Below, in pieces: positions 263 through 12,300 of a stretch of DNA of 64,000 nucleotides (positions within the stretch are counted from its first letter, which is position 1; the number at the start of each line of letters is the position of its first letter). The notes under the pieces are model-generated. The model had not been told where the DNA came from. It did not search any database and saw only the letters and a program-made list of their open reading frames with translations. A program made the translations under genes and the position numbers. Origin of the DNA: Bugula neritina (taxonomy: Eukaryota > Animalia > Bryozoa); contig OZ037767.1 in the NCBI GenBank assembly GCA_964035545.1, positions 24,630,628 to 24,694,627 on the forward strand, read 5' to 3'.

Positions 263-268
263 CTTTGT
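263..268 (+). other. Candidate 6-nt ACC microexon (CTTTGT)
   Basis: TACTAAT branch-like motif, pyrimidine tract (ttcacctctattttcc), AAG acceptor and perfect GTAAGT donor at 269; frame-preserving in phase 2-2. Confidence 0.45.
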
Positions 269-417
269 GTAAGTGTTCTGTATTGTTACAAACAAACACT
301 GTGTTTTTTATTTACTTTTTTTAACATTCAAGCCTTAGTTTCTAAATGGGTTGTTTTAGTTGTTTGTGGTGTTGTTGTGCTCCCCTCAATGTTGTAATGT
401 AGCCATAATTTATTCAG

Positions 418-441
418 GTCTAGGAATAGCTTGTGTCAAAG
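418..441 (+). other. Candidate 24-nt ACC microexon encoding (R)SRNSLCQ(R/S)
   Basis: ttattcag acceptor and AG|GTAAGA donor; open in phase 2-2, matching the phase of exon 3311. Confidence 0.6.
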
Positions 442-1026
442 GTAAGAACACCTACTATCTGCTTAGCTTTCCTGTTCTCTCCGCACTATGACAGAGTTCT
501 GTAGATAGAGTTACGCTGTTTAATGTTCATTTATTCTAAATTTTTCTCAACTTTTATATACGGATTTATGTTATTATTTAAATATGCAATCATCATACAT
601 GGTTTATATAATCTCCATAGCCTTTTGATGATATTTTGGTTCATCTTTGTTCTAGTTTATTATTTTCAATTTGTTTTTCTTTTGGGCTGCTATTTGGTAC
701 TCGAGTTCTTTTCAGTAATTATTATATAGTAACTCTACCTACAGACTCTGGGGCTATCTGCTAAACCTGGGGATATAAAACTGTGATACAAACTTTACTT
801 CTTGCATTTAAGCATGCTAATATCATACCTACAGCATAGTTTGAAGCCTCATGGCACAAACTTTCCTAATGATAGGAGGGGGTGTAGTGGACGCCCCTCT
901 CCTGATCAGCCAGTTAGACCCTGTGGGGACTAAACCCTATTGCAGGCAATTATTTAACCTTTTTTAAACATGCAGCTGATACCTGCACATCTACACTGAG
1001 TAGTGAAACAGATTAGTTTCACTCAG

Positions 1027-1041
1027 ATATTTGTACAAGAA
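1027..1041 (+). other. Candidate 15-nt ACC microexon encoding (R)YLYK(K)
   Basis: tttcactcag acceptor and GTTAGT donor (a donor type used by constitutive ACC introns at 7151, 10244 and 10903); open in phase 2-2. Confidence 0.4.
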
Positions 1042-1345
1042 GTTAGTTAATTGTCTGCTTTCGTACCATTCACATGGTGTATGAATTGTTTTCAATTTTC
1101 CAAAGTGCATTTTCACTCATTACATGTTATAATTCCAACCTCTTCTACATTTATATCAATTATAAACAGTTTATAATGTTATAAGCGTTGCAAGGCAGTT
1201 GTTCCAATAATTCTTGTAGTATTTCTGTTGTGTTTATTAGTCAAAACATGGCCCTTTTTTTATGTTGAGTTTCTCTTTTGTGCTTTTGATTAACCAGCAT
1301 GTCAACTATGTTTTCCTACATTTTTCCTGTTAATTTTTTTGTTAG

Positions 1346-1393
1346 GACCATAAAATCAAGAAATTTGAGCGGCCAGTCGTTAAAAATGATGAG
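1346..1393 (+). other. Candidate 48-nt ACC cassette exon encoding (R)TIKSRNLSGQSLKMM(R)
   Basis: Long T-rich tract then ttag acceptor, AG|GTGAAT donor; open in phase 2-2. Confidence 0.55.
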
Positions 1394-2273
1394 GTGAATT
1401 TGAGTGGGCATGAACACCTTGTTTGGTGGTTCCCAATGTCCTATAAGCAAGGCAGTTATCTTTCCTGCTACATGCTGAGCTTAACGCATGCAACTCAATG
1501 CTTCTCTCAGCATATAACTTAGCTCATGCATAATGCTTTGTAGTTGTCTTCCTTTTCTTCCATTGAAATTCCAGGGGTTGGTTAAGTAATTTTTGCTGCT
1601 ATAGTTGTGGTGGTTGCCGACAAATGTACTTCCTCAGGCTATGCCATGTCCAATCAGCTTAAAATTTGAAGTTCTTATGTCCACCAGTTGTTTTTCGAAA
1701 TGTTGATCTGTGCATCAGTTTTTCATTATGAGTTTTATTGAATTTCAATAGCCGTAAATTGAATCATGTTGATTAGTATCTGTTAAAAAAGTTGCTCTGC
1801 TGAATCATCTAGAAATGGAAAAAATAACACTAATATTATTAAAAAATTGGAATTGAAAGATGCTATAGGGATTGTCTCCTCACTCTTCATAATATAAGTA
1901 CCAATATAAGCCACATATAAGTGGCAATGCAATATATTTGTTCAAGTAACTTTCCTGCGAGTTACATTGGGTAGTAAAATGTGTAGTAAACACTGCATGA
2001 TCCATCACAAGCTCAAGTCAAGAAGTAAAAGCATCGGAAAGAATCACAAGGCGCTTTATCAGCTAATCTGTAGTCAGAATTAACTCAATGAGATTCTGCA
2101 CAAGTTTTGCATAATCTTTACCACCTTTTAGATATCTGGGACAATAATAGCACTGTAGAAACTTGCACTCCCTATACTCTGTACACTAGGATATTTCCAC
2201 CTAATGCTTGTATAATACAATGCCTATATATAATATAGTACCTGTATAATTTAGTGCAACTTCAATTTTACAG

Positions 2274-2285
2274 GCCTCTACTCAA
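2274..2285 (+). other. Candidate 12-nt ACC microexon encoding (R)PLL(K)
   Basis: tgcaacttcaattttacag acceptor and perfect GTAAGT donor; open in phase 2-2. Confidence 0.55.
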
Positions 2286-2454
2286 GTAAGTCTTGATCTT
2301 GTAAAATGCTTTCTTAGTTTGATTCATGGCTGCCCTTTTCTTTGCATCTTCTGCCCTCTATCAGCTTCTAGTGGATTGCATAGCCTTGCAGCATCTCTCT
2401 AGTGCCTGTAGTAAAACTGTGTGTTATATCGTAGCTCTAGTTGGCATGCAATGG

Positions 2455-2533
2455 TGGCGGTAGTTGTGGTAGTATTAGTATTAGTAGTAGCAGTAGTAGT
2501 AGTAGTAGCGACATAAGTGGTAGCAGTAGTAGT
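2455..2533. repeat. Degenerate (GTA/GTG/GCA)n microsatellite in ACC intron
   Basis: gtagtagcagtagtagtagtagtagc run seen directly. Confidence 0.8.
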
Positions 2534-3310
2534 TAACATTTGCCTAATCTGTATACCATACTATGTTTTACACTGTACAGCATGTATTACTGTAGATGTA
2601 CATTTCATAGCATGAACTATACAAGTTTACCTTCACATTTATAATGTTTCATCTCCTTGAAATTGTTAGCAACTTAAAAAGTTTGGTATTTATTGTTGTA
2701 TGTGCATAGTAGAGCTATAATATTGTTTAGTATCCTATGTTTGTATGACGTGTTACCTTATGGATGTAGTAAACGTTTCTGCACTACTTACAGCTTGCTT
2801 CATACTCATTAGTGTGTTTACTTACTCTCCTAAAAGCAAATGAAATTTGTTATATTTGCCTACATATGAATAACAAACGCATCAGAAAAGTACTTGTTTT
2901 GTGTTGAATTAGATATGTTGATTTTTGTAATTAAAATATGTCAGAATTTCATATAAACTGTTAGAAATGTTATAATGAAATGTTTAAGTTGTTTAATAAT
3001 ATATGAAGTTAGTTTTTGCATGTGCAGCATGTGTTGAATTTGATGGTGAAAAGTGTTAATGTACTGCTAAAATGGGAAGTGAATGTCTTATTTTATGAGT
3101 ATAGTGTAAGTACTGATTGATCAACACTATTTGTACTGTCGTAACCTACTATTCACTGCTATGTAACCCAATTTAATTATCAAAGTAATACAAGGCATGA
3201 AACTCTTCAAATTGACTCCTCTTAGTAAATGAGTGCTATCTATTAACTTATATGAATATGAGTAACCATGACAACTGCTCTTGCGTAATAAGGGGAAATT
3301 TCTCTCGTAG

Positions 3311-6300
3311 ACACAGACGATCTTCGATGTCGAGAATCAACAGTGTGAGTGATCACGAAAGCCTATGCACATTCACAGCCACCGAACTTCCTCCCTGTCA
3401 AAGAATGGGAGTTATGGCCAGCTTTAGGAGCTTCGAGGAGTTCACACAGTGAGTATTCAGTCTAGATGGGGGGAGGGGGGTCTGCCCCCCCCCAGCTGCT
3501 AGGTTGTAGATACTAGATAGTCAACTATATCTGACTGCATAGGTTGTGTTTTGTAGATTTCTGTTGTGTCTTCTTGCTTCATTGGCTTCACTGTAAATAA
3601 AATTATGTTGTAGTCACTTTGACGTGTTGCTAAGAAGATTTGTCTTCCCGACAATAGACTACCACGACAAGGCTAGCCTATCTACCTCCCCTAAAGAACA
3701 TACTGCTGCAACTGATGATGAGCCTATACACATCCTCATGATAGCCGTGAAGGCAGATAAAACTGAAAACACAGACGAGGAACTGAGCAACAAATTCTTG
3801 GAATTCTGCAACGCTAAGGTGTGCACTCGTAACTTCTGAAATAATTTAGCAGCTCAGCATATTGATAAGCTATTCTGGGCGGTTCAAAAGGAAAATTGTA
3901 GACCTGCAAGTCTTGACAAAGTGTAACACATCTACCTATTGAGTAAAATATGTTTATATGATTCTTAATCTGGAATTATTATATATTTTATGGCTGGTTC
4001 TTGCAGTTCTGGTAATTTTCTAGTACTTGTATATTGTTTAGTTATATTTTATTCTCCAGCTAGTTGTACACTGTTGAATCTTCTTTATTTAGTCTGCTGA
4101 CATGAAGGCAAAGGGTATCAGAAGGATCACATTTGCTGTCTTGTATTCTAAACTGTGGCCTAAATACTTCACATACCGTCACCGTAAAGCTGTAAGTATC
4201 TACCTTACCATAGTATTGTCTACCTTGCTATAGTATTGTCTACCTACCAAATTTTTCCTTACATTTGCATTATCTGCAGACAGCTTGAAGCTCACCAGCA
4301 GTCTCACGTTCTGTTTAATCAGACATAAATTGAATTCTGTTTCCACCATTTAACATTATGTCAACAAATATATTGCTGTGAATGAAACAATCACTTAAAT
4401 CAGGCGTATACATTTTAAATTATATATGCTCAAGTATTCACTGTACGTTAATATATATCTCTGTATCCACATCTCTCTCTCTCTATCCACACGTCTGTTT
4501 CTATTTAGTATGCAGAAGACAGAATCTACCGGCATTTGGAACCGGCTCTTGCTTTCCAACTAGAAATAAATCGAATGAGAAACTTTGACCTCGAGGCTAT
4601 ACCGATTGACAACCACAGGATGCACATATACCTGGGGAAGGCTAAGCAGGTGTCCCGCACTCAAGAGTCTACGGACTATAGGTTCTTTGTCCGAGCTATC
4701 ATTCGGCATCATGACTTTGTTACCAAGGTATGTGTTCAGGTTACTTCTCTAGCTTCCTACGCACGTAGAAAAGTTAAAATCAATTTTTAAAGTTGCTTAT
4801 ATTTACCAGTTAAATTCATGAACATTTATATCAAAATTAAAATTTAGTTTTAAGAAATTTTCTATTAATGAAAGTTGTTCAGAATTTTTCAATTTGCAAC
4901 TTGGTTTATTTGTGATGTTTTTTTTTTAAACAATTGTTTAGTTGATTGATGATAAATTTTATTAATATTGTTTTTTCTAAGCAATTTAAGAAATCTCAGT
5001 GTAAAAACCCCAACTTATACAAGCTCAGTCTACAAGACCCTAAATAACATAGTCTCACGTATTCATGTCAACCATTTGTTTGTAGGAGGCTTCCTATGAG
5101 TATATCAAGAATGAGGCTGAGAGGACTCTGCTAGAGGCAATGGATGCTATGGAAGTTAGCTTCTCTCATCCTCTGGTAAGATATTTCACTAGTTGATTAT
5201 CTCACCTTGCACGTGTGTGTGGATAAGGAGATTGTAGACTAACAAACTGCAGCATTCTACGCTGAACCAGGGGTTGTCTATTAATATGTAGCTTAAGTGT
5301 GTAAATGCTGTAAGACAGTGGTTATACTCCTAAGAAAGTATTTTCTTTGAGATCCATTTGTTACCCTAACAGCCGCTCTGCAATACGTTTGGAGAATTTT
5401 TGATGTAATTTGTTATTCCGTTTCTCTATTGTACGTGTGCTGGTTATGCAATGTTGTCCAGCAGTGTGCAGCTTGTTCTAGTTAGCGGGAGTAATACGAG
5501 ACTCTTGTGGTAGACAGGATGCAGCTAATAAGTTGTCTTCTTTGCAGAGCTCCAGGACCGACTGTAACCACGTCTTCCTGAACTTCACCTCAACTCTGAC
5601 AATCACTGACCCAATGAACCCTAGTCAGCTGATGAGCACCGTACGAGAAATGGTTGTTCGTTACGGCCCTCGGCTGTGGAAGTCTCGGATCTTACAGGCA
5701 GAGCTGAAGATGACCGTCAGGTATGAATGTTATACAACATATCATCATGTTCAACTTTCACTACCATGTCCTGGTCGGGTGGTGGATGCAACATAATATC
5801 ATGGCTGTAGCTTATTCAATATACTTAAGATGTTGAGATGTAAAATTATTTTTTGTTCCTCATCAGTTTTTCTTGTTGAGGGAAGTGTTTCCATGCATTT
5901 CTACCTTCATTCTGATGTTATACTTTATGGCCAGCCATGCAAATATGCATCATAGTTGTGATGTAGTCCTATACTACAAGTGTGTCTAATACTGTGGCTT
6001 AGCTATTAACTTAATCTGGTTGATGAATTCAATAAAAAATGGAACAGCATATAAAGCAATATGCACAGTAGAAGACAATTACTAAATAGATTATTTGTTG
6101 TCAGATTTCAGCCAAATGGAGAGAAAATACCAATAAGAATGTTTCTGTCAAATGAGAACGGCTACTCTCTGGACATCAGCATGTATAAGGAGGACACTGA
6201 CCCTGTCACTAGCCAGGTCACCTTCAAGGCGTTTGGCAATAAGTCGGGACCTCTTAATGGCTTACTGGTCAGCACACCCTACATGACCAAGGTAAGACAA

Positions 6301-9300
6301 TTACTAATCAGCACGCCTTACATGACCAAGGTAAGACAATTACTAGTCAGTATGCCCTACATGACCAAAATAAGACAATTACTAGTCAGTACACCCTACA
6401 TGATTAGGGTAAGACAATCACTACTCAGTAACACTCGAATCAGGAAAATATGACAAACGCTTGTAACAAAGTCCAGATCTAGCAATAGGCTACTTACTTA
6501 TATAGTTGAATGATCTTCTACTTATTTTAAACGTCTGCTGCTTTTTAGGATCATCTTCAACAGAAGAGGTTTATAGCTCAGAACCAGAACAACACGACGT
6601 ACGTTTATGATTTCCCTGAGGTGTTCAGACAGGCTCTCTTCTCCGCCTGGCAGGCTTCCGGAAAAGGTAAAATAAACATACTGTCGAAAATATGTATTCA
6701 TTTTGCATACTAACTGCTGATCATATTATTGTGTTTTCTGAACTTGCTCTACGCTGCTAAGCAAGAAGCTGCTATTTAAGGTTTCAAATCCTACTTGTAA
6801 AAATATGTTTCTTCATCTTATCACACATATTTCAAATTGTATTTACTCTTTGCAATTAGTTGTGTTAAATGTAAGTAGTGGGATGAAACGTTTTTGCTAT
6901 TGCCCATGGGTTTCACACTGTAGAAATATACACATAATGCTTTCCTTCATTGTGTAACTTGTTCACTAAGCACATGGCATGTATAGGGGTTTATCCAAGT
7001 ATACCTGTCTGCCAACATACAATATGTATGATGCTGGTGGTTGTTGTAGGCAAGGAAATCAATGCTGCAGATATAATCGACTGCACAGAACTGATATTAA
7101 ATGCCGACAAAGAGTTGGTTCACCAGACTAGACTACCCGGAGAGAACCTGGTTAGTATTTTATTGAACACTGCATTCTGTAGCAAATGTATGTATAAAAT
7201 GTCTTCAGAATAAACATGTCTGTAGCTATCTGTAGCAGGCGTATGTACGAAATGGTTTCGGTGTAACCTTGATTTGTATCTGCATTATTTGTGTGTGAAG
7301 TTCAGATTAAGCACATCTTTAATACATTCTTAATTAGATTGGTATGGTGGCCTGGAAAATGACCCTGAAGACCCCGGAATACCCAGAAGGTCGTGATATC
7401 ATCATCATAGCCAATGACATCACGTTCAAGATCGGCTCATTTGGTCCAGACGAGGACCTCCTCTTCCTGCGGGCGTCGGAGTACGCCAGAAAGCACGGTC
7501 TTCCCCGAATCTACATATCCGCTAACAGTGGGGCACGCATCGGTATGTGGTTACCATAGCAACCAGCTTACCCAGCTTGCCTGCTGCACCATACTTGACA
7601 TACCTTTACAATAAATAACTTGATAAACTTGAACTTGTTTCTGAGCTGAATGGGAAAAGAAAATTGTTAAAACTGTTTACAGGTGTGGTTCGTAGAGATT
7701 ACGTTTACTCTCCTAAGCCAATCACAGTGACTTTTCTAATGCTGACTTAAACAACTGCGCTGTTTAACAATATGTCATGTCTCAGCCCACTAGAAATTAT
7801 GTGATATGTACTTTGATGTATTGCTTTACAGGTTTGGCTGATGAAATCAAACCCCTGTTCAAAGTTGCATGGAACGACAACTCTGACCCTGACAAAGGAT
7901 TCAAGTACCTGTATCTGACACCAGAGCACTTCATCAAGGTGTCAGGTTCAGTGAAAGCCCAACTGATAGAGGATGAGGGAGAATCTAGATATAAGATCAC
8001 AGATATTATAGGTAAGGTGCTAGCAGGTGCTCTAGTTTGCATTGGTTAAATGCTTTCTAGTATATTGGCAGCAACTCATGCTTGAGAGAAATGTATGAAC
8101 TATTTTTTGATATGGCAAATAGAAAACATCAACAGTTTTATATAATACCAATTTAATAATGTTAAACTTGGCTATATGACTATTATTTTACTTGTATCGT
8201 GATAACTGTGTACTGGATATTACTGATTTCATTAATTTAAAGCTATCAACAGATTTTACCTTTAAGATCCCCAGCAATGCATGTTATAGTGTCTGTATGA
8301 GCTGAAGTGAAGTAGTTAACAGAAGTACTTGCTGTTGTATAGGTGCTTCACACGGCCTGGGAGTAGAGAACTTGAGGGGGTCCGGTACGATAGCCGGCGA
8401 GTCGTCCCAGGCATACAATGAGATCCCAACTATAAACCTGGTGACTTGCAGAGCTATTGGTATCGGCGCCTACCTGGTGAGGCTGGGGCAGAGGACCATC
8501 CAGCACGAGAGCTCACACATCATCCTCACTGGAGCTGGTGCTCTCAATAAGGTGGGTTCAGGCTACGACTTGCTTATTTCTTGCATGTGGCATAATAATC
8601 TAGATAATGTAGAGTGTATTTTATTCTTAATAATTATATATGCCATACTAAATTTTATTACTAAATGCTGTAATTTATAGTAATGGATTTAAATAATTGG
8701 TATAAGATGCCTACAATTTATAGATAGTTTAGATTATATTTTATCATTTGTAATTGTATGGACCCACTAAATTATAATTTAATAAATTACATTGCTAAAT
8801 GTTCTAATTTATGTTAATGAGTTTAAACAGTTGATTGAAGATATATTGTGTCAGCTGTATAATATTACCTAATAACCTGCATACTGTAGGTGCTAGGTCG
8901 TGAGGTGTATAGTAGCAACAGTCAACTCGGTGGAACACAAATCATGTACAACAATGGAGTGTCACATCAAGCTGTTAGCCATGACTTGGAAGGAGTTAGA
9001 ACTATAATCAAATGGCTCTCCTACATTCCTAAGGTTTGCCGGTACACTTACTGGTTCTTATATGTCTGTTTCCTGTATAGAGTGCAACAGTGCAAGGGAG
9101 TGTAGCTTGCATACACATGTGTATCCTATCTTACCTGTGTGTGTATTGCTTCTTGATACAATCTCACAGTCACTAACAGTTGCTCCACGTTATGTGAATG
9201 GATTTTTCATTTAATGTTTGGAAACAGTTACTTCGAATAAAACCACAACCATAAGTTAATGCAAACCGCAACCACAAATTCATCCATACAGATCCATTGG

Positions 9301-12300
9301 AAGCAATGGGAATGCAATGTAGGCAATTCTCACAGCCTTTCTTAGTTCTAACTATGTATAAAGAGACCCCGGTTTAATTCTCCTTAGACAGATGGTGTGT
9401 TTAGTCATCCCATGGCTTTAGTTATTGTATTTGTTGAACAGACAACGCAATCTCCGTTACCCATCACCATATCATCAGACCCTGTAGACAGGAACATTGA
9501 GTTTATACCGTCCAAGACGCCATACGACCCTCTGCACATGCTCGCTGGCAGGGAGACGGAGGGCGGGTGGCAGTCTGGTTTCTTTGACAAGGTAAGCTAG
9601 TAAATATTTTCTACTCAACTTTAGTTTCCTCTACAAAATAAGATATTGGGCTAATACACAGTAAAAGTATATTTAAACCCACTTTAAAGCTGCACAATCA
9701 AGTGCAGCTATTGCAGAGTGTTGAGGTAAATACTATTAATGCTCACTGCAGGGTTCATTTGACGAAATAATGGCTGCCTGGGCCCAGACTGTAAGATGTG
9801 GTAGGGCTAGACTGGGAGGCATACCTGTAGGGGTCATAGCTGTGGAGACGCGAACTGTTACACTCTCTGTCCCCGCTGATCCTGCCAATCTAGACTCTGA
9901 AGCTAAATTAGTCCCTCAAGCAGGTAATGCTTTGGCGAAAGCTACATTTTTATATAGCAAGTAATAGAGATGTAATTTTCTGTTCTAGACTTTGTAATGT
10001 CGGATTTTATAACTTTTTTGAAAAAATGAATTTAACCTAAATGTACAAAGTTTTAATATCGGAAACATTAGAAATACCACAATGCCTTCGTAAGCCATTT
10101 CCTATCTCTCACAACTAATATAGGTCAAGTCTGGTTTCCCGACTCTGCATACAAGACCTCACAGGCTATCAAAGACTTCAACAGAGAGGGTCTACCTTTG
10201 ATGGTGTTTGCCAACTGGAGAGGTTTTGCTGCGGGCATGAAAGGTTAGTTATATAACTTGTGTGTTCCTGGGTGTTACGGAATTGGCTACAGTAAATGGC
10301 TCTCATGGAGGTTGACCAATCAAGACTTTGTAACGTCACCATTACATGTTTACAGCATCACAGAAGAATATTTCCCGGTAAACGACATCAAATGTACTCA
10401 AAAATTGCCTCATTATTGTACCACAGCTGATTTATTTTTTAATTTTTAAATAAGTTTGTTTGGTTTGAAATCTAGCACTAGCTTCACACACAAAATACTG
10501 GTGCTACATATACGCCCCCTCAGTCACTCCAGCTTTTCTGAATTGGAATCTAGCTCTATGATAAGCTACCATAACAAAATTGGCACACTGTGTAGAGAAT
10601 TTTAAAACCCCCACCTCTTGCTTCTAGCTAATTGGCTGGTTTAGAGATTATGAGCATACGTGTAATAATAAATATACTCAGTTAAATGCTGGCAACTTGA
10701 GTATAACTCAACTGCATGTTACAGATCTGTATGACCAAGTATTGAAGTTTGGTGCATACATAGTCGATGGTTTAAGAGAATATAAACAGCCAATCATGGT
10801 ATACATTCCACCTCACGCTGAACTTAGAGGCGGGGCTTGGGTTGTCGTAGATCCAACAATTAATGATCGCCGCATGGAGTTGTATGTTGACCCACAAAGC
10901 AGGTTAGTGGAGCTTAGCTTAGCGTTGCCAGCTGCCCTCGATGGTTAATACTGTAGCCTATGACTAGTTGCGGTAATTTCTAGTGTTGGTAATACTGTTG
11001 TGTATGTTGATAGAGGTGGTGTGTTGGAGCCCACAGGCATTGTGGAGATCAAATATAAACGCAGAGACGTACTAAAAACCATAAGAAGGCTTGACTCAAA
11101 ATATCAGGCTCTTGCTGAGAAACTGGTTAATGAGAAACTATCCATTCAAGAAAAGGTATTTGCAAGTTATCTTGGAGAAATGTATATTTGGAGATTTTTG
11201 GCTCATGTAATGTTGGTTTTACTTGCAGTACTTATAGTAACTTCTATAATTGCTAATAATACTAGTGTTATATTACGTAGTAGCCAGAGTGTTTTTTACA
11301 GTCAACAGTAAATAATATGTAATATATATTTACAAATAATACTGTTATTGTTTGACCACCAATCCAACACCTATAAACTCTACAAGTGCCTGTGCAAATG
11401 TCAGAGTTGTGTAACCTTGCTATTTATTTGTTAGCATGACATTGAGCTGCAGATGGCGCATCGAGAGGAATATCTCATCCCAATCTACCACCAGGTGGCA
11501 GTTTCATTCGTAGACTTGCACGACACTCCTGGTAGGATGCAAGAAAAGAACTGCATAAATGTGAGTTTTGTATATTGTACTTTTGCTAATATATGTTTGA
11601 GTTCAGTTTTAGGAGTTTTCTACTCTAGTGGCTGTTTAACTATATTCACATCAAACCAACTTTTAAATTCAAAATATTTGTGTGTAGCTTGTGTTTTGAT
11701 CTAACCTTGAAATAATGCAATCAACTCTTTACATCATCATCCAATATAGGACACGTAGCTACCTTGAACGTTGGAAAGTATTGTAGATGTTATAGACATT
11801 GAACTGAAGCAAGGTTTATACAATTTGATCGAATTTCTCATGGACTGTTGCGCAATATTTACAGGATATAATTCCATGGAGTGGAGCCAGGAAGTTCTTC
11901 TACTGGAGGTTACAAAGACTGCTGCTGGAAGATCAGGTGATTAAACTGGTCAAAGCTGCCAACCCGACCCTCACTGACCTGCATATCCAGTCAATGCTGA
12001 GTCGCTGGTTCGTTGAGGCCAGAGGTGCTGTACAGGTTAGTTGACTTCGTATTCGTATATTTAGTTGAGTTCATATTCCACGGGGATATGCTTGTGACTT
12101 GGTTTTATTCATCAGCTAAAGTTAGTATGTTCAAATACCTATTATTTGGAAAAAGCCTATGATATTATATTTTATTGTACTGTATTATATTGCACACATC
12201 AATGATTAGTTGGAATAACATATATGTGTAGAAATAGCGTGTTCAGATTATCCCAATCATCTTCCTGGCTATTCTATGAAGGGTCCCTCTTGCAAGTAGC

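Follow-up and report, generated by a model that had tools for sequence, protein, structure and literature searches.

Acetyl-CoA carboxylase (ACC) catalyses the committed step of fatty-acid synthesis, which is controlled by phosphorylation, and is encoded by a single-copy gene in Bugula neritina, according to a paralogue search of the same genome. The window considered here is the whole 64,000 nucleotide stretch OZ037767.1:24,630,628-24,694,627 (forward strand), and a further 20 kb upstream was examined as L002. The window opens inside an ACC intron which separates an exon ending in TSHPN from the constitutive exon that starts at position 3311 (exon 3311, Table 1). The span between these two exons is in phase 2, runs to position 3310 and measures 3315 nucleotides, whereas ten neighbouring ACC introns, which were mapped by eye and verified, range from 87 to 399 nucleotides. 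A first-pass annotation of the window had rightly drawn attention to the length of this intron and had proposed that it holds five frame-preserving mini-exons which could be combined into up to 32 variants. The proposal depends on an upstream exon that ends in phase 2, and this is the case as TSHPN is followed by AG, the first two nucleotides of a split codon. On the sequence evidence described below, the 3.3-kb 'intron' is four introns parted by three putative coding mini-exons, which are referred to as e24, e48 and e12 after their lengths in nucleotides.

Table 1. Features in and next to the long ACC intron of B. neritina (window coordinates unless prefixed with L002; a slash marks an exon boundary)
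Feature	Position	Strand	Length and phase	Sequence or encoded residues	Remarks
Upstream ACC exon	L002:9877-9995		ends in phase 2	VYIRRGY...FQFLLPTSHPN + split-codon AG	Donor CAG/GTTGGT; ends 5 nt before the window
First sub-intron	L002:9996 to 417	+			Lies between the TSHPN exon and e24; first nucleotide 4 nt before the window
6-nt candidate	263-268	+	6 nt	CTTTGT	Unsupported as exon
e24 (putative)	418-441	+	24 nt, phase 2-2	(R)SRNSLCQ(R)	Conserved island
15-nt candidate	1027-1041	+	15 nt		Unsupported as exon; splice scores fair, rank 6/116
e48 (putative)	1346-1393	+	48 nt, phase 2-2	(R)TIKSRNLSGQSLKMM(R)	Conserved island
GCATG	1408 and 1486	+		GCATG	+15 and +93 nt downstream of e48
e12 (putative)	2274-2285	+	12 nt, phase 2-2	(R)PLL(K)	Conserved island
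Exon 3311	3311-3448	+			Next constitutive exon after the TSHPN exon; encodes the regulatory loop's C-terminal half

All five proposed segments are bounded by AG and GT, are multiples of three in length (3n) and are open in phase 2, and a recheck of their coordinates confirms that they end in GT, AG or AA and that three of them have GTAAG donors. The 3n length and the open frame are not in themselves a signal. Of the 847 AG..GT segments of 3-60 nucleotides in the intron, 270 are 3n. The phase-2 frame is also open in 104 of these, a number that shows no excess over the 121 +/- 17 obtained in Markov shuffles. Since about 100 segments share these properties by chance, only independent evidence is able to separate the candidates from one another. 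The caution attached to the proposal, that some of the segments might be chance matches, is borne out by the two of five that lack a conserved counterpart. A splice-site position weight matrix (PWM), which was derived from only 12 donors and 11 acceptors of the same gene, ranks e48 second, e12 fourth and e24 twelfth among 116 open 3n candidates.

Conservation of the mini-exon candidates

The orthologous introns of relatives were taken from metagenome and Logan contigs (L004, L005-L010, L011, L012 and L014). Comparison of a 45 amino acid exon with a representative protein library yielded two short genomic open reading frame (ORF) fragments which lead to the contigs L004 (Logan) and L005 (ENA metagenome, BRYA16), and scanning of metagenomes together with a word search for the upstream exon supplied further contigs. 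L006-L010 belong to the same species as L005, L011 and L012 each carry both flanking exons, and L014 represents the closest relative with an upstream exon that is 90% identical at the amino acid level. Together the contigs cover five related species which are presumably bryozoan, or six species with B. neritina. Apart from a (GTA)n-type microsatellite, the only recurrent collinear matches in 15 pairwise blastn comparisons of these introns are three islands that coincide with e24, e48 and e12, and the order and the phase (2-2) of the islands are alike in all species where they are found. Alignment to related species therefore places three of the five segments above the intron background.

The orthologues of e24 are exactly 24 nucleotides long in 6/6 species, form collinear blastn matches, encode (R)S-x-[N/T]-[S/T]-[L/M]-x-x(R) and are followed by a GTAA donor. 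An in-frame acceptor at position 403 would give rise to a 39 nucleotide version of e24 (403-441) and has a PWM score of 5.8 as compared to -1.3 for the 24 nucleotide boundary; the boundary that is conserved in all six species is the 24 nucleotide one. The second mini-exon, e48, has a length of 48, 48, 48, 51 and 54 nucleotides in five species including B. neritina, and shares the core K-S-R-x-L-S-[G/R]-x-[S/T] and a donor which reads AG/GTGA or AG/GTAC. The B. neritina copy matches that of L014 with a blastn E value of 2.6e-6. No e48 was located in the L011 intron, where a stretch of 24 nucleotides with the same AG/GTGAAT donor (L011:6537-6560) may be a remnant of it. The smallest of the three, e12, follows the pattern YAG/GCC NNN CTN AA/GTAAGT in 5/5 relatives, which amounts to seven copies when B. 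neritina and the second contig of one species are counted, and all copies encode (R)P[L/F]L(K) with synonymous changes. Its island gives the strongest blastn match within the intron in all pairwise comparisons. Degenerate motifs that were built from the relatives only have a single match each (at 418, 1346 and 2274) on both strands of 84 kb of the locus.

The way in which the islands vary makes it very likely that the three segments are real coding exons. Pairwise differences over the aligned codons of the three exons amount to 0.42, 0.23 and 0.68 at the first, second and third codon position, and exon identity is 0.53-0.73 compared to 0.25-0.36, which is the random level, in the 30 nucleotides of intron on each side; these pairwise statistics are phylogenetically non-independent. 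The species often use different codons for a conserved residue, including AGC versus TCT for serine which represents a switch between the AGY and TCN families. Short islands within otherwise unalignable introns would also be the form taken by non-coding intronic elements such as a small RNA or sequences that regulate splicing or transcription. Such an origin is nevertheless exceedingly improbable here because the substitutions are 3-base periodic in the predicted frame and the residues are kept through different codons, because AG and GT flank the segments precisely in all species, and because the length changes (48, 51 and 54 nucleotides) are in multiples of three only. The nucleotides at the exon ends also follow a pattern. 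AG is the terminal dinucleotide of the upstream exon, e24 and e48, and AA is that of e12. The first nucleotide is G or A in every mini-exon and A in every constitutive downstream exon, so that every combination would stay in frame, remain free of stops and carry Arg or Lys at each junction (AG/G, AG/A or AA/A). The earlier statement that no combination creates a stop codon holds for the mini-exons. A practical consequence is that gene models which skip exons of 12-48 nucleotides mispredict the ACC protein.

The two remaining candidates, of 6 and 15 nucleotides, have most likely arisen as chance AG..GT matches. Neither of them coincides with a conserved island in any of the intron comparisons with the five relatives, none of which has a counterpart of the 15-nt segment. 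The acceptor of the 6-nt candidate is a poor AAG, and its PWM rank is 90/116. It is true that both segments are flanked by AG and GT, are 3n and open, and that the splice scores of the 15-nt segment are fair. Furthermore, the first sub-introns of L011 (5832-5837), L012 (4336-4341) and L014 (1898-1903 and 2071-2076) contain 6-nt AG-N6-GT segments with an open phase-2 frame, which exceed the Markov expectation of 0.07-0.09 per intron. However, the 6-nt segments of the four species differ in sequence, in encoded residues and in position, and about 100 segments equivalent to the candidates are expected by chance. A recurrent 6-nt exon was predicted for L004, in which 543 nucleotides lie upstream of e24, and for L006, in which there are 287 nucleotides, and none was found in either. 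An arrangement of five cassettes with up to 32 variants is for these reasons very unlikely. The first-pass annotation is upheld for three of its five mini-exons and not for the other two, and three exons allow at most 2^3 = 8 combinations.

Several further features of the ACC introns lie outside the mini-exons. The B. neritina intron contains a (GTA)n / AGT-ACT period-3 tract at 2460-2535 (TRF: 2460-2508), the orthologous intron of L004 holds far longer (GTA)n-type tracts at 600-770 and 1320-1760, and tracts of this type are the sole non-exon blastn matches between the orthologous introns. About 20 nucleotides past the donor of exon 3311, a G run, GGGGGGAGGGGGG, is followed by a C run, CCCCCCCCC (3467-3493). 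Two upstream ACC introns (L002:8630-8940 and 9320-9560) consist mostly of tandem repeats of about 27-30 nucleotides with GTAGTAACACACTATTG-like and GTGTAGTGTTGGTACAGTG-like units. A further upstream intron (L002:9725-9876) splits ...MAALE from VYIRRGY, and L014 encodes both in one exon (1600-1795), which points to the gain or loss of an intron between these relatives. ARAGORN places a tRNA-like gene (2303-2390, minus strand) in the L005 intron of ACC that follows the phospho-loop exon. The program assigns no definite type to this gene, whose anticodon loop is odd and which may be an intron-containing tRNA; no tRNA-like gene is present at the matching place of the B. neritina stretch.

The regulatory phospho-loop and possible cassette use

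Alignment to the solved human ACC1 places the upstream exon at residues 1152-1191 (...SHPNR1191) and exon 3311 at residues 1212-1245, and the first serine of the INSVSD motif in exon 3311 aligns with human Ser1216. Human Ser1216 in turn aligns with yeast Ser1157, and both are part of a 36-residue regulatory loop in the CDC1 domain which, when it is phosphorylated, wedges between CDC1 and CDC2; human Ser1201 is located in the same loop (Hunkeler et al., PMC4833862). The assignment of exon 3311 to the regulatory phospho-loop region, which had been made from the letters of the window, is thus corroborated by the position of this serine. The HRRSSMS sequence of exon 3311 is conserved in the relatives. 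The alignment of the flanking exons and the position of the loop imply that the mini-exons would add up to 28 residues to the N-terminal arm of the loop, before HRRSSMS...S(V)SD. Counted from SHPNR to the conserved serine, the arm would consist of 10 residues without the mini-exons and of 38 residues with all three, and it has 24 residues in human. The basic and serine-containing motifs which the segments were said to add are indeed present, in the form of S-x-N-S-L in e24 and K-S-R-x-L-S in e48.

The first-pass annotation also pointed to RBFOX-type motifs. TGCATG does occur at 1994 and 3017, but only at chance level (2 versus 1.67 expected, P 0.5) and at a distance of 280-290 nucleotides from any exon. 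The GCATG core behaves differently, with 11 occurrences in the B. neritina intron versus 3.4 expected and 32 versus 15.5 expected in the sense orientation over the six introns, which places it at rank 6 of 1024 pentamers, and its antisense count is at chance. GCATG is found within +100 nucleotides of e48 in 4/5 species (P ~0.009), including two copies in B. neritina (Table 1). The enrichment of GCATG, the failure to find e48 in L011, the mammalian precedent described below and the fact that each exon is individually 3n with symmetric phase are indirect hints of regulated splicing. On this basis the balance tips slightly towards at least one of the three mini-exons being alternatively spliced.

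It is also quite possible, although short of probable, that the three mini-exons are real but constitutive, in which case the arm of the loop would simply be encoded in small pieces and no combinatorial isoforms would arise. The mini-exon donors score 7.0-9.6 in the PWM, which is strong in view of a constitutive median of 7.1, and neither the synonymous sites nor the flanking introns show extra conservation. What a constitutive arrangement leaves unaccounted for is that each exon is 3n and in phase 2-2 in every species and is joined through Arg or Lys, none of which would be needed if the exons were always included, and that e48 is not found in L011. The enrichment of GCATG and the alternative use of the mammalian exon which precedes the same phospho-cluster speak against it as well.

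The interpretation preferred here, which is considered reasonably probable as a whole, is that the three conserved mini-exons are frame-preserving cassettes (<=8 isoforms) that modulate the phosphorylation of the loop. Inclusion of e48 would add K-S-R-x-L-S, in which a basic residue occupies position -3 as preferred by basophilic kinases, e24 would add R-S-x-N-S-L, and e12 would set P-L-L-K directly before HRRSSMS. Depending on which of the up to 8 combinations is produced, the number, the context and the spacing of basophilic-kinase sites would change along with the length and the reach of the loop. Such changes would modulate the phosphorylation-dependent inhibition of the enzyme, in the manner of the mammalian 24-nt exon 28 and Ser1200. 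The GCAUG elements downstream of e48 may aid its inclusion as RBFOX-type sites.

A number of observations weigh against cassette use. Two word searches with single exons gave one match each and a third with a one-exon alignment gave only genomic ORFs of more distant animals, and no transcript sequence across the junction was among the results. The exons could all be constitutive. The third codon positions and the intron flanks are saturated, without the extra conservation that is typical of regulated alternative exons, and the arm of 10 residues that would be left by skipping all mini-exons, compared to 24 residues in human, suggests that some inclusion occurs by default. The excess of GCATG stems mostly from two of the six introns, the test of its proximity to e48 is post hoc, and the reading of the kinase motifs is taken from consensus motifs alone.

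Comparison with mammalian exon 28 and animal microexons

Splice control of the central phospho-loop of ACC has to our knowledge been described only for exon 28 of the mammalian gene, which affects phosphorylation, milk fat and fatty liver. In PMC11494077, which refers to Kong 1990 and Barber 2001, exon 28 of mammalian ACACA (ACC1/ACC-alpha) is described as an alternative exon of 24 nucleotides that encodes 8 amino acids upstream of Ser1200. The same paper states that exon 28 is skipped in some tissues and that skipping alters phosphorylation and activity (PMC11494077). Like exon 28, e24 has a length of exactly 24 nucleotides, and it follows ...SHPN(R). In human ACC1 there are 20 residues between R1191 and T1212, which fits an insert of 8 amino acids right after SHPNR. 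As judged from the protein numbering and the literature, exon 28 most likely sits in the same intron position as the bryozoan mini-exons. The two groups differ in that bryozoans have three exons (24, 48-54 and 12 nucleotides) where mammals have one, and the peptide encoded by exon 28 is not known to resemble the bryozoan peptides.

The intron itself extends to more distant animals. L016/L017 and L018, which were obtained by word search and one-exon alignment, keep the same phase-2 intron with AAC AG/G or AAC AG/A at the exon junction, and in L016 (8640-8980) and L018 (1790-2045) it measures only about 140 and 46 nucleotides. No mini-exon is present in the phase-2 intron of L016, L017 or L018. 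After SHPN, L018 continues with R-M-S-Q-R-E-Y, which presumably resembles the human sequence after SHPN(R) minus the insert of 8 amino acids. The bryozoan mini-exon motifs are also absent from the long introns of L019 and L023 (about 6 and 3.3 kb, a single species each) and from the amphioxus locus L022, where the upstream exon is out of reach and the stretch reads N. The orthologous intron of L019 harbours an ORF of 1158 amino acids on the minus strand (5244-8720) with endonuclease and reverse-transcriptase domains, and this LINE-like element explains the length of 6 kb.

The position of the phase-2 intron after SHPN(R) is therefore ancient, and the predicted mini-exons are known so far from the bryozoan group only. 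Because distant animals keep the intron without a mini-exon, independent exonisation is as likely as common descent of e24 with exon 28. No mini-exon that would link e24 with exon 28 through intermediate lineages was found among L016, L018, L019, L022 and L023. A more far-reaching and rather doubtful proposal is that the SHPN(R) intron is a recurrent site for the addition of kinase-site modules, that the bryozoan array, in which the Arg or Lys at every junction would generate or preserve a basic residue ahead of a serine, combinatorially sets the response to AMPK/PKA-type kinases and that e24 may be a homologue of exon 28. If the three-exon array of a lophotrochozoan is indeed used in this way, splice tuning of the ACC loop would be old or recurrent, and if e24 is homologous to exon 28, a microexon in the ACC phospho-loop would be a bilaterian-old feature.

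Animal microexons range from 3 to 27/30 nucleotides, preserve the frame and are often regulated by RBFOX or SRRM4. A literature search for ACC microexons in invertebrates found none. Like animal microexons, e12 and e24 fall into this size class, are 3n, have strong GTAAG donors and a deeply conserved peptide, and show an enrichment of GCAUG nearby. In common with microexons they also encode a segment of a surface-exposed or disordered loop that is rich in modification sites. They depart from the known pattern in that e48 is too large, the gene is metabolic and not neuronal, the flanking introns are unconserved and any regulated inclusion is putative.

With respect to the loops of yeast and human ACC, the conserved serine is shared and is encoded in a constitutive exon, and the mini-exons would lengthen the arm in which human Ser1201 is located. 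The natural variants predicted for B. neritina, with arms of 10-38 residues with or without K-S-R-x-L-S, would be suited to tests of kinase access and of the CDC1/CDC2 hinge. In yeast and human the arm of the loop is described as part of the protein, whereas the bryozoan arm appears to be split into candidate modules that could be spliced separately.

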